DNA of 60,507 bases, counting the filler, from Hausera hauseri (Eukaryota): assembly GCA_046269625.1 (NCBI GenBank). It is 12 parts of 12 records of this genome, joined end to end, with 100 filler letters (N's around TTAATTAATTAA, not from the genome) between each part and the next. Parts side by side here need not be neighbours in the genome. Positions count along the whole stretch, not along the records: positions 19,976 to 24,408 come from JBJURY010583778.1; 11 more parts are not named here. One strand, given 5' to 3'. A model generated the notes under the pieces. That model made no database searches. It had not been told where the DNA came from and saw only the letters and a program-made list of their open reading frames with translations. A program made the position numbers and the translations under genes. Shown here piece after piece: positions 19,876 to 24,408 of this stretch. Numbering within the stretch: position 1 is the first letter of the stretch; each line of letters starts with the position of its first letter.

Positions 19876-20191
19876 NNNNNNNNNNNNNNNNNNNNNNNNN
19901 NNNNNNNNNNNNNNNNNNNTTAATTAATTAANNNNNNNNNNNNNNNNNNNNNNNNNNNNNNNNNNNNNNNNNNNNATTCAGTGGCACCGTTTGAAGCGGA
20001 AAACCATTTACGAATTGGCGATAGTTGTGACGATATTCCTTTTATTGATGATGATGCATGTTATACCGATTTTTTCTATGGTTATTCGAATTATAAGGTG
20101 TGGTTAATTAAACATCCACGACTCTCTAAATTTATTGACACATACAGAGCCCCGACCAGTCTGCAATGAACACTAGCCATCAGGAATTGGT

Positions 20192-20272
20192 TGTGGCGCC
20201 TACGCCGTCGGCTATGCTGCCCGAAGATAATCTGGTCGGAAACCTGGGCGCGTCCGTGATCCGTGCGCCACA
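20192..20272 (+). repeat. Putative 81-bp 5' LTR of element B
   Basis: GC-rich block bounded by TGTGGCGC...GCGCCACA. An unrelated ORF runs up to its left edge and the gag ATG follows 2 nt after its right edge. The partner LTR is not in the contig. Confidence 0.65.
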
Positions 20273-20274
20273 AT

Positions 20275-21470
20275 ATGCCTCTGGCATCACTCTTTAACCC
20301 CTTTCTTTTTTGTTTTTAAAAATAACACACATATTTCTACCATACACACTAGTAACATGGACCTTGCTTACACCCTCTGTATGTCTCTATCCTCTTTCTT
20401 ACACACTTCCGACATTTATTTTTCGCACCATGGTTTTGTGCTACAGCCGTCTGATTCACTTTCTTCCTTCGCTTCTCTAATCATTTATGTCTCCCTTTAC
20501 TTTCACATCCGGGGTGGTTCGGACCCTGATCCTTCTGCTGAAAATTCGGCCAAAAAAGATCTGGTCATTGCCCTGCTGACTGCACAATCTGCTTCTCCTA
20601 ACCTTTCTCGCACAGACTTCTTCCTCGATAAAACTAATTCAAGCCGCACTTGGCTACAATTTCATTTACAATGGCTTAAAGCCAATCAAATTACCGATTC
20701 TTGAGCGCCAAAAGCTTGTTACTTCTTCTCCCAGCAAATATCAAGCATAAAATCAATAATCTTGCTGATGTTCTTACTTCTCCAACATCATATGACATGC
20801 TTTACAAGTCTGTTCTTCATATTACCGATCCATCGATTGATAATATAATACAGAAGTACTTTAACGAACATGCTATAGGCAATCAAAAGCCTTCTGACTT
20901 TCTGCAGACCTCTGTTTCACACCTAAGTGCGCTTGGCGTTACCCCCACCAACAATGCGGACTTGATTCGTCGTTATTTCCTCTCCCCCTTACCCATTTCC
21001 ACCAGAGCTCTCCTTACTGTAGTTAACAACTCGACGGCGATTGAAAAACATGCCCTATTGGCTGATAAAAGTTTCGAAATCTTGCAAACTAACAACTCAC
21101 AACCCGTAGCTGCAGCAACGACGCATACCTCATCTCACATAGACATGACTGTTTTCGCACAGCAACTACAATTCATTCAGAAACAATACGATACTCTACA
21201 ACATTCAATTTCCGCCATCACGGCCCAACTAAATAATCTGTCTATGTCTCGGCGAGGTGAGACTCGTGCATCGCGTGAGCGTAGCCTCTCCAGGCACTCA
21301 TTTCGTTGTAAATCTCCTGGCGGACGAATGATTTGTTTTTATCACGAGATTTTTCGTAAAAGCGCAGAAAAATGTCTCTTGGGTTGTAGATTTTACGACG
21401 AGCGTTTTTTTCTCATCCTCCTTCTTCTTATCAGTCATCTTCTTTTCCTCCACAATTTTAAAAAAACTAA
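20275..21470 (+). pseudogene. gag: gag of element B with N-terminal ubiquitin-like domain (to 20518)
   Basis: ATG 20275 with a frameshift in a T-run, then FVFKNNTHISTIHTSNMDLAYTLCMSLSSFLHTSDIYFSHHGFVLQPSDSLSSFASLIIYVSLYFHIRGG, then capsid-like region (...YDML...IGNQKPSDFL...LIRRYFLSPLP) and CHCC knuckle. Confidence 0.8.
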
Positions 21471-21502
21471 AAAGGCCGCCAGATGCTACGGCACATTCTG
21501 GC
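21461..21502 (+). promoter_or_regulatory. Candidate -1 ribosomal frameshift signal at the gag-pol junction
   Basis: Slippery heptamer AAAAAAC directly followed by TAA, then a stem GCCAGATG...CATTCTGGC. Element A has AAAAAGC-TAA at the equivalent gag end. Confidence 0.55.
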
Positions 21503-24408
21503 ATTGGCAATACTGCTCAGTCTTCTGGCCGTCTTAACACCGCCTCCGCAGTTTTTCTGTTAAAAGCTATACTGTTCTCTAGAAATGCTCCACGTATCGA
21601 TTTCCTCATCGATTCAGGAGCTGCCTTTTCACTCCTCTTTTTGTTCTTCGTCTCTACATCAACGGCAGTTTCTTCTCCACCGCTTTTCACTGCCAGTGAT
21701 TAACCTTTGAGAATCGCAGGTACCACGGAACTGGTTTTTACATTTTCAAACTTACCAGGCTAGTTTGTCTGGAAATTCCACGTGGCCAATATTAAATCGC
21801 CAATAATCGGCTCAGATTTTTTGGCCGCACACCACCTGCTAGTTGACTGTAAGTATGGCTGTTTGCTACGTAGAGACACCGTCGTGAACGTTAACAATTG
21901 ACTAACACACAGCTCAACAGGCCAATCGTCTGCGAACTCACACGTGAATTTGGCAAATTGCTCGTCGGTTGATAACGATGTATTTAGTAGTTTATCTATT
22001 TTCTTAATTACAACTCAAATATCAAAGTCGATTTTAAAACAGTCGGTTAAACCGAATATTGACGGCGTTGACGTCGTTCATTCTTCGCCAATCACTGTCA
22101 CCGCCTCCTCTAATAATACGCCTCAATCATTTTTATCACTAGATTCCAATCTCAAATCCTACATTATTTCTTCTTGTTTTCGCATACTCAAAAAGGACTC
22201 TAGTTTTAAGCCACCATCAACAACTTATCACCACATTGTCACCCAACACCAAAAACCTATCAGACAAAAGGTGAGACCATTATCGCATCGTAGACGAAAA
22301 GCCGTGGAATTAGAGTTTAACGAACTCGAAAAATCTGGTATCATTCGGAGGTCCAAATCACCATGGGCTTCACCATTGCATGTAGTAGCACAAAAGGACG
22401 GTACTTTTCGACCATGTGGCGACTACCGTCAAGTAAACAATCTAACCATCATGGATGCTTACCCATTACAGCTCATAAAATACATCCTGCACAGTCTTAA
22501 CAACACCAATACGTATTACACAATAGATCTGCGTAAAGCCTACGATCAAATTCCCGTTGCACCCGATGACATTCCAAAGACTGCTGTAATCACTCTATTT
22601 GTCCTTTACGAATACATCTTTATGCCATTCGGTTTACGTAATGCAGCCCAAACTTTTCAACGCCACATCGACACCGTTTTTTCAGGCCTTGATTTTGATC
22701 ATCCTTATATCGATGACATATTAGTTGACTCCAATTCCATGAAACAACACCATGAATATCTCCAAATTATTTTTCACAGATTACATCATAGGAACTTACA
22801 AGTTAACGTCTCCAAGTGCAACTTCTTTCGGAAACGTGTCAATTTCTTAGGCCACATCATCACTACTCACGGCCACTCTCCACAACCTAATCGACTACAG
22901 CAATTGAAAAATGTAATATTACGAACGACTACTACAGATATAAGAAGTTTTCTTGGCACACTACATTTCGTTTACAAATACATACCGCATTGGTCTGAGC
23001 TTACAGCACCTTTCGCACACCTCTCATCTGGAAAGAAAAGACAGTTAGTCCAATGGACTCCCGATTTAATCATCAAATTCGATCACTTACATGAAGGCCT
23101 AAAAACCGTCGAAATACTGGCTATTCAAAACTCGACGCGGAGCTAATACTTACCACCGATGCCTCTACCACAGCTACTGGTGCAATACTACACCAGATTT
23201 CCAACGGTGTCGATGAACCTTTGGAATTTTAATCTCGAAAACTCACACAACCAAAAAGCCGGTATTCAACATTTGATCGTGAGCTATTAGCCATAGTTCT
23301 GGCAGTAAAACATTTTAAGCATCTTCTCCACTCTCGTCCATTTATCATCCAAACGGATCACAAGCCTCTGCAGCACATAATGTCACTAAAACAGCCATCA
23401 CCGAGGCAGAAACGACAGATATAGTACCTATCTACATTTAGTTTTGTCATAAAATATATTTCGAGTGCTGAGAATTTGGTCGTGGATTTCCTGTCGCGGT
23501 GGATCTGCTTAATTACGACTGAACCAATATTTTCTACCGAAATTCTAAAGCTTAATTAGCCGTCTGCTGATATTCTTAACTCTTTCAAATCCTTCGAAAT
23601 CATTGATGGCACTGCATGCGATACATCTAACACCGGTAAAAAAATCATTCTCGCTCCTTCTTTACAGAAACTAGCTTTCCTTCACACGCATTCACTTCAT
23701 CATCCAGGTTCAAAAGCCACGTTTCGCTTGCTCCAACGTCATACAGTTTGGCCATCAATGCGCACAGATGTACAGAATTGGGTTAATAAATGCGTCGCCT
23801 GTCAAAAATACATCTTAAACCGCCGCTTTACCATTTCCCATGTACATCACTTTTTCATACCGTCCATCTTGATCTCGTTGGACCCTTGCCTTTTGATAAC
23901 GGGTACCAACATATTCTCACTATGATGGATCGTGCTTATGGCTGGCCTGAAGCCGCTCCTCTCCGCTCAACAAACACTGATTCAGTAGCAGATGCCTTCA
24001 TTAAAATCTGAATCAGTCGTTTTGGATCCCCACGGTACATCATAACGGACCAAGGTCCGCAGTTTGAATCAGAACTCTTTAAATCGCTTGATAAACGCTT
24101 GGGGATATCACATTTCCATACAACACCGTATCATCCACAATCAAATGGCCTTCTTGAAAGGTTCCATCGAACAATGAAACTTTCTGTAAAAATTTTGGCA
24201 GACAATCATCGCAATTGGACGTCCATCCTACCGTTTGTTCTATTCGGGTGGCGCAACACTCCTTCCACCACCACGGGTTATGCTCCAGCCGAGGCACTTT
24301 TAAAACTCCAATACGGGCTCTGTTCGAACTTTCCGACCTCGACGAAAATTCGACAGACGAAAACATTCGCGCGGCACAGTCTCACTTTGTTGAGTTCAGC
24401 TCAGACTC
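21471..24408 (+). pseudogene. pol: pol of element B (PR-RT-RH-INT)
   Basis: ORFs 21944-23146, 23728-24011 and 24099 onward, plus intervening stop-interrupted frames. Confidence 0.95.

Follow-up and report, generated by a model that had tools for sequence, protein, structure and literature searches.

A ubiquitin-derived domain ahead of Gag in a branch of CsRn1-like LTR retrotransposons

The window is a 60,507-nucleotide stretch (filler included) of Hausera hauseri DNA, consisting of 12 parts of 12 records of assembly GCA_046269625.1 joined end to end. One of these parts, positions 19976-24408 on the + strand (JBJURY010583778.1), holds most of a decayed Ty3/Gypsy long terminal repeat (LTR) retrotransposon, which is CsRn1-like as judged by the CHCC knuckle of Gag and the order of domains in pol. 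Comparison of this copy with its relatives shows that a diverged ubiquitin is fused – through its terminal R-G-G – to the N-terminus of Gag; our preferred explanation, which we hold to be probable, is that this ubiquitin was captured from the host and is cut from Gag by host deubiquitinases. A sequence-only reading of the window had described the fusion as the second of two, the other being in an element (element A) that lies outside the piece analysed. The interpretation of a ubiquitin-like (UBL) domain placed before Gag and kept by selection is supported here by comparisons that are independent of element A.

The ubiquitin-like segment and its relatives

The reading frame at 20231-20701 (frame 20231+3n) is open for 157 codons and reads ...PFFFVFKNNTHISTIHTSNMDLAYTLCMSLSSFLHTSDIYFSHHGFVLQPSDSLSSFASLIIYVSLYFHIRGG, then SD, just as the sequence-only reading had it in placing VSLYFHIRGG, ending at 20518, ahead of Gag. 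The UBL, a ubiquitin-derived domain with a predicted beta-grasp fold, comprises a segment of about 73 residues (20300-20518; first strand from 20303) that ends in H-I-R-G-G. The arginine of this tail is encoded at 20510-20512, the two glycines at 20513-20518 and the Ser-Asp that follows at 20519-20524; the whole (20510-20524) is, by its conservation in relatives, the proposed cleavage site. Downstream of the GG, a linker and the N-terminal region of Gag (20519-20701) are recognised by BLASTP and tblastn to relatives, with the Gag motif DFFLD...WLQFHLQWLKAN (pattern DFFLD..S..WLQFH) beginning at 20615.

A Pfam search of the UBL segment on its own gave zero matches at E <= 1, and phmmer against the PDB did not match it to ubiquitin; its score against a profile built from five near-ubiquitin relatives is 1.8 bits, a value equalled or exceeded by 56 of 2000 shuffles. 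The coding strand from 20288 to 24408 is depleted in G and rich in C and T (GC skew about -0.3, reaching -0.56 in the UBL), and S, T, F, L, H and N are also abundant in the proteins of the closest relatives, in what looks like a compositional bias at the level of the lineage. Since the strand contains only about 10% G in the UBL, open frames rich in S, T, F and L are favoured, and control by way of relatives is therefore needed.

The two pieces of gag, on either side of a frame break at about 20700, were searched separately. Searched against 1.84 billion representative proteins, the open frame of Gag has 909 homologues at E <= 1e-3; the best matches that extend upstream of the core all possess a segment of 70-80 residues that ends in GG and sits 15-50 residues ahead of a shared FFLD..S..WL motif. 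Across the UBL, the GG and the Gag N-terminus, the piece from the window aligns by BLASTP with the proteins P0003 (46% identity, E = 8e-30) and P0004 (E = 5e-18). The Pfam ubiquitin family PF00240 is matched over its full length by P0093 (3.7e-23, 81.5 bits) and also by P0085 (2e-7, 31.1 bits), both above the Pfam threshold, with weaker matches in the correct register in P0124, P0019, P0017, P0050, P0010, P0083 and P0024. At the N-terminal region of Gag homologues match DUF7041, mostly below threshold (P0085 and P0025 pass). A homologous-protein search within a limited length band found none for the 157-residue piece and gave only two fragments for the Gag query, and a close Gag alignment searched against JGI metagenomes found no related loci.

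The DNA of relatives is known from 18 metagenome loci fetched for one subgroup (the P0024 alignment), and 13 of these carry a continuous UBL-GG-Gag open reading frame (ORF). At one locus, L013, a run of 76 residues follows ubiquitin from end to end, with ATG as the codon of Met1, and leads through GG into Gag; L003, L008 and L016 resemble it, and the remaining loci are diverged. The tail of near-ubiquitin members is exactly LRLRGG. The pol of L013 is intact: its frame, open from 1218, runs for 1112 codons and overlaps gag (which ends at 1299) in the -1 frame. Intact elements thus carry the ubiquitin module.

Judged by profiles and intermediate sequences, the UBL domain is homologous to ubiquitin. 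A 26-member profile (the window copy plus 25 relatives) matches mono-ubiquitin in the PDB at 7.6e-11, positions 53-126 corresponding to ubiquitin 2-76, and it aligns to polyubiquitin and ubiquitin-fusion chains across the junction. After removal of all members with any Pfam ubiquitin match, the 17-member control profile has ubiquitin, ubiquitin fusions and ISG15 as its top matches (about 1e-4 for single-domain chains). Profile-profile comparison of the domain alone with hhalign, which bears out the similarity to ubiquitin suggested by the sequence-only reading, pairs the subclade of the window copy (that copy and P0003-P0006) with the near-ubiquitin group at 95% (E = 3.7e-8, 75 columns) and with the other diverged members at 97.9% (5.8e-13); the latter pair with the near-ubiquitin group at 98.9% (1.9e-17). 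Scored one by one against the near-ubiquitin profile, the members grade continuously from 154 bits to about 0, and identity to ubiquitin ranges from about 80% to below 20% with the GG tail intact. The UBL-Gag fusion claimed from the window thus stands by way of its homologues and their profiles; the segment by itself did not sustain it.

The domain is predicted to adopt a beta-grasp fold. With the full alignment, AlphaFold2 models a strand-strand-helix-strand-strand-strand order at residues 25-91, where the predicted local distance difference test (pLDDT) score is 83-90; with a control alignment from which ubiquitin-like rows had been removed the topology is unchanged, and pLDDT in the domain is about 80-90 in both models. 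The top Foldseek matches in the PDB all belong to ubiquitin-family beta-grasp structures – SUMO2, ISG15, ubiquitin variants, Hub1 and the UBL of Ddi1 – with target-normalised template modelling scores of 0.61-0.73 (first model) and 0.53-0.64 (control) at modest E-values (0.01-0.1).

Several gene calls among the relatives carry foreign parts. In P0003/P0152, P0011, P0014 and P0019 a ubiquitin-Gag shares one ORF with foreign N-terminal sequence, and in P0002 a fragment of Gag (not a ubiquitin-Gag) does so; the foreign parts comprise Rrp44 CSD1 plus a CNOT1 fragment, histone H2A, 5'-nucleotidase, cohesin SCC3 HEAT and PF19089. Chimeric assembly, read-through or the capture of fragments could each explain such calls.

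Distribution, conservation and the start of the protein

The distribution of the domain was read from a FastTree tree of 147 Gag cores from which the UBL columns were excluded. One branch (support 96) splits 37 Gag rows from the other 110. The 37 comprise 27 with a UBL (the window copy included), seven that are N-terminally truncated and three that are apparently without; on the opposite side the domain is present in 0 of 110 rows, of which 88 are complete at the N-terminus. At least three changes of domain state are needed on this tree. Because the domain is confined to one side of a supported branch, the module is a trait of that branch, which is consistent with a single acquisition. One exception, P0023, has a Gag nearly identical to that of P0085 and begins with Met exactly at the residue after the GG of P0085: it is either a variant that lacks the UBL or a gene call from an internal start. 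Within the subgroup with DNA, an IQ-TREE tree places the diverged-UBL loci L007 and L010 among the near-ubiquitin loci L013 and L016 (95/88, 99/98); from this nesting it follows that the domain decayed more than once, or was refreshed from host ubiquitin.

With ubiquitin numbering taken from L013, 36 diverged members were compared with five near-ubiquitin members. In the diverged members the hydrophobic core (positions 3, 5, 13, 15, 17, 23, 26, 30, 43, 50, 56, 59, 61, 67 and 69) is kept. Retention of the GG, which the sequence-only reading had noted in two families, extends to G75 and G76 of all 36 diverged and all five near-ubiquitin members. Position 72 holds R in 24 of the 36 and K in four, position 73 L in 24 and I in ten. 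The recognition patch of ubiquitin is lost in the diverged members: L8 is deleted in 31 of 36, I44 is replaced by S, T or C, V70 mostly by N, H or S (in the window copy positions 44 and 70 are S and Y), and lysines are mostly lost, the chain-forming K48 being kept in 17 of 36 and K63 being mostly N. Directly after the GG stands S in half of the diverged members (18/36) and P in none; the second residue is D in 20 of 36. The best-kept parts are the fold core and the R-L-x-G-G tail.

Pairwise Nei-Gojobori ratios of nonsynonymous to synonymous divergence (dN/dS) are 0.14-0.5 in the UBL (0.14-0.35 in lineages with near-canonical ubiquitin) as against 0.07-0.17 in Gag, while those of an unalignable upstream 'leader' scatter between about 0.3 and 1.4; all are rough values, since dS is often above 1. 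They indicate that the UBL is under purifying selection. Together with the 27 rows on one supported branch and none among the 110 opposite, they uphold the earlier view of an old, selected feature of the lineage.

Less of that view's account of the protein start survives. The sequence-only reading had placed the UBL at the N-terminus, without a long leader, starting from an ATG at 20275 and reached through one frameshift in a run of T. The codon is present and lies in a different frame from the UBL. Homology to P0004 begins at 20288, already in the frame of the UBL and ahead of the T-run (20303-20316), and a frameshift there therefore does not join the upstream start to the UBL. An N-terminal position without leader is likewise unsupported in this copy, which has no usable in-frame start: the sole in-frame Met (20357) falls within the domain.

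Upstream of the domain, 19976-20287 (+) would be either flanking DNA or LTR or untranslated region (UTR) of the element. It contains two short ORFs, at 19981-20169 (open to the edge of the piece) and 20166-20297, for which no matches to relatives were found, and by tblastn no protein homology to P0003, P0152 or P0004 was seen upstream of 20288. Base composition changes at the same point: G content is 23% before 20288, where composition is balanced, and 10-16% after it. The copy may be truncated at its 5' end, or the upstream stretch may be an unrecognised LTR or UTR.

The ubiquitin-bearing relatives possess a primer binding site that is conserved as DNA, TGGTGTCAGAAGTGGGAT..., which translates as 'WCQK' and which we take to be the complement of a tRNA-Leu-type 3' end. 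Sites reading TGGTGTCAGAAGTGGGAT(TCGAAT) occur at L004:1979-2002, L001:352, L005:706, L009:2759, L014:630 and others, and in L001 and L004, where the distance was measured, the site is 195-255 nt ahead of the domain. No tRNA-Leu-type site of this kind was found in the piece; candidates at 19982 and 20194 were rejected, neither fitting the layout of a tRNA 3' end. The long 'leaders' of some gene calls were also rejected as a real N-terminal domain. In the relatives with DNA they are unconserved as protein and contain the DNA-conserved primer binding site; they are therefore read-through of LTR and UTR, and the true N-terminus must coincide with the start of the domain or lie no more than a few dozen residues ahead of it.

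Proposed processing of the junction

If our preferred explanation is correct, then an ancestral element of the branch took up the coding sequence of a host ubiquitin, and its descendants would since have produced their polyprotein as ubiquitin-Gag and ubiquitin-Gag-Pol. Cleavage after the GG by host deubiquitinases, as in polyubiquitin and in ubiquitin-ribosomal-protein fusions, would free Gag with a defined N-terminus other than Met, usually Ser-Asp. In this role ubiquitin would act as a cleavable N-terminal module: an aid to expression and folding, and a processing site independent of the element's protease. We infer cleavage after the GG from the absence of Pro behind it, the preference for Ser-Asp and the start of P0023. 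Conservation of the fold core and of the RLxGG tail, which Pro never follows, together with loss of the receptor surface, is more in keeping with a cis-acting cleavage module than with a signalling ubiquitin.

It is conceivable, if unlikely, that the UBL instead stays attached as a permanent N-terminal domain of Gag, recruiting, for instance, host factors, the proteasome or sorting machinery, or aiding particle assembly. Non-cleaved UBLs are common in cellular proteins (that of Ddi1, for example, was matched by Foldseek), the beta-grasp core has been preserved, and engineered ubiquitin-Gag fusions do alter the fate of Gag (PMC3914991). A domain of this kind is, however, difficult to reconcile with loss of the L8/I44/V70 ubiquitin-binding surface, or with the fact that the best-kept part is R72-L73-x-G75-G76 with Pro absent after it, as a site of cleavage or activation needs. 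Integral UBL domains, moreover, usually lack a GG, and P0023 begins exactly past the GG position. Cleavage by the element's own aspartic protease, the GG being just part of a retroelement processing site, we regard as improbable: a DSGA protease is indeed encoded downstream and retroelement polyproteins are normally self-processed, but retropepsin sites are usually hydrophobic on both sides, whereas R-L-x-G-G is inherited from ubiquitin, is a classical deubiquitinase site and is preserved exactly in the near-ubiquitin tail.

The usefulness of the released UBL itself, as extra ubiquitin or as a conjugatable modifier supplied by the element, is very improbable. It is through the GG that ubiquitin is conjugated, some viruses carry a ubiquitin gene of their own, and near-canonical ubiquitin is under purifying selection in some lineages; yet most members lack L8, I44, V70 and most lysines, which makes use by E1/E2 or by receptors unlikely, and they keep the domain all the same. 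The least credible explanation, to which we give almost no weight, is chance or artefact, be it a pyrimidine-rich decayed stretch or gene models in which a host polyubiquitin gene has been run together with an adjacent element. The weakness of the window segment when taken alone, the open frames favoured on a G-poor strand and the chimeric gene calls with foreign N-terminal parts would all be accommodated. Such an origin does not account for a junction that recurs across many separate families and several independent sets of samples (ENA, JGI, Logan), always 15-50 residues before the Gag motif and restricted to one clade, or for profile and fold evidence that holds.

Several points weigh against cleavage of a captured ubiquitin. 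The segment in the window is by itself not significantly ubiquitin-like, and the case for deubiquitinase cleavage at the GG is argued from sequence. Many deubiquitinases also contact the I44 hydrophobic patch, so that its loss in diverged members could make recognition poor. N, Q and D are destabilising N-terminal residues under the N-degron rule, and in some members one of these follows the GG, where cleavage would expose it. The start codon is ambiguous, the Met1 codon of ubiquitin being Ile or Phe in four of the five near-ubiquitin copies (L003, L008, L016 and P0093) and ATG only in L013, and the gene calls with long leaders run through LTR and primer binding site. The large tree was made with FastTree only, the states scored as lacking a UBL hinge on gene calls, and the dN/dS values are coarse for the reason given above.

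A wider proposal is that a CsRn1-like branch domesticated host ubiquitin as a deubiquitinase-processed, cis-acting Gag module, and that these are the first natural ubiquitin-Gag retroelements; on this our confidence is evenly divided. The module would end as a minimal 'fold plus RLxGG' cassette, after repeated degeneration or re-capture of ubiquitin, and the stability of Gag could be governed, through the N-degron pathway, by the residue that cleavage exposes (Ser in most cases, Asn, Gln or Asp in some).

The decayed element and its place among known systems

The rest of the element is recognisable in spite of its decay. The frame break in gag lies at 20698-20703 (+), with a stop at 20702-20704 and a change of frame at about 20698 in tblastn alignments of P0003, P0152 and P0004. 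The core of Gag, identified by its homologues (P0001 at 60% identity), follows as an open frame of 278 codons at 20701-21537 (+). A CHCC regular expression finds the first Cys-His knuckle, CX2HX9CX3C = CFYHEIFRKSAEKCLLGC, at 21334-21387 (+). A second CHCC knuckle, intact in relatives such as P0001 and P0004, is degenerate in the window (about 21388-21470), where zero Cys codons remain.

The domains of pol stand in the order protease, reverse transcriptase, RNase H, integrase (PR-RT-RH-IN), spread over three frames of the + strand. The first (21455-23131; RVT_1 PF00078 at 1.1e-25, and tblastn) holds the protease motif DSGA at 21611-21622 and the reverse transcriptase motif YIDD (YxDD) at 22706-22717. 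The second (23134-23823) holds TDAS of RNase H (the DAS motif) at 23155-23166 and the HHCC zinc finger of integrase at 23683-23802, and the third (23811-24408, ending at the edge of the piece) the integrase core (rve_3 PF13683 at 2.5e-6, and tblastn). By tblastn, pol is colinear with that of the metagenome loci L013, L002, L011 and L006 at 36-51% identity. Three in-frame stops interrupt 21455-23131 (at 21701, 21761 and 21899), three interrupt 23134-23823 and one interrupts 23811-24408 (at 24009). With gag broken in frame, pol interrupted by seven in-frame stops and shifted twice in frame, and no usable in-frame start, the copy in the window is dead and non-functional.

The CX2HX9CX3C or 'CHCC' knuckle is the Gag signature of the CsRn1 clade of Ty3/Gypsy elements (PMC2582038). 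With the CsRn1, PwRn1 and AgCR elements of the CsRn1-like clade (PMC2582038) the elements described here share this knuckle, the PR-RT-RH-IN order and conservation over the whole length of Gag, as well as – in the relative L013 – a gag/pol overlap with pol in the -1 frame; this overlap (L013:1218-1299) fits one expression strategy reported for CsRn1-like elements. They differ in that the ubiquitin-bearing relatives have two CHCC knuckles, that the description of the clade mentions no ubiquitin domain, and that it gives a tRNA-Trp primer site (PMC2582038), where our reading in the ubiquitin-bearing relatives is tRNA-Leu-like. In the piece from the window, a primer binding site of the tRNA-Trp kind, or of any other, is not recognisable.

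By analogy, the nearest natural counterpart is the capture of ubiquitin before NS3 by pestiviruses. In cytopathogenic pestiviruses (bovine viral diarrhoea virus, BVDV) host ubiquitin is inserted ahead of NS3 (PMC13517609); in both cases a host sequence appears to have been captured by a replicating RNA element, directly before a viral protein, with a host-dependent processing site. The pestivirus insertions, however, are sporadic, recent, independent and linked to the disease biotype, whereas the retrotransposon module is branch-wide, stands before Gag and has only the fold core and RLxGG left. Polyubiquitin, ubiquitin-eL40/UBA52 and ubiquitin-eS31/RPS27A similarly join ubiquitin through G76 to the first residue of a partner; here, by contrast, the partner is a capsid protein, ubiquitin is not conserved as such and cleavage is putative. 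UBLs of the Ddi1/Rad23 type also place an N-terminal beta-grasp on a retroelement-related protein (Ddi1 combines a UBL with a retropepsin-like protease), but these form an integral part of their proteins, offer no GG for cleavage and serve to bind the proteasome, whereas in the retrotransposon UBL the GG never varies and the binding patch has gone. Ubiquitin has been placed at the N-terminus of retroviral Gag for vaccine work (PMC3914991); those constructs are artificial, whereas the retrotransposon fusion appears to be natural. No published description of a natural ubiquitin-Gag retrotransposon was found in the papers searched, an absence that is not proof.

For annotation, the consequence is that gene callers split, truncate or over-extend ubiquitin-Gag ORFs and that Pfam misses the domain in most members. 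The natural divergence series shows which features of ubiquitin are needed for function in cis and, if our explanation is correct, what a deubiquitinase substrate must keep. Among the extras known from LTR retrotransposons are chromodomains, env genes and additional RNase H domains; to these, ubiquitin captured before Gag would be added as a new accessory module. It would also mean that a retroelement delegates one step of its polyprotein processing to host deubiquitinases, and does so as a fixed trait, where in pestiviruses the same solution is sporadic.

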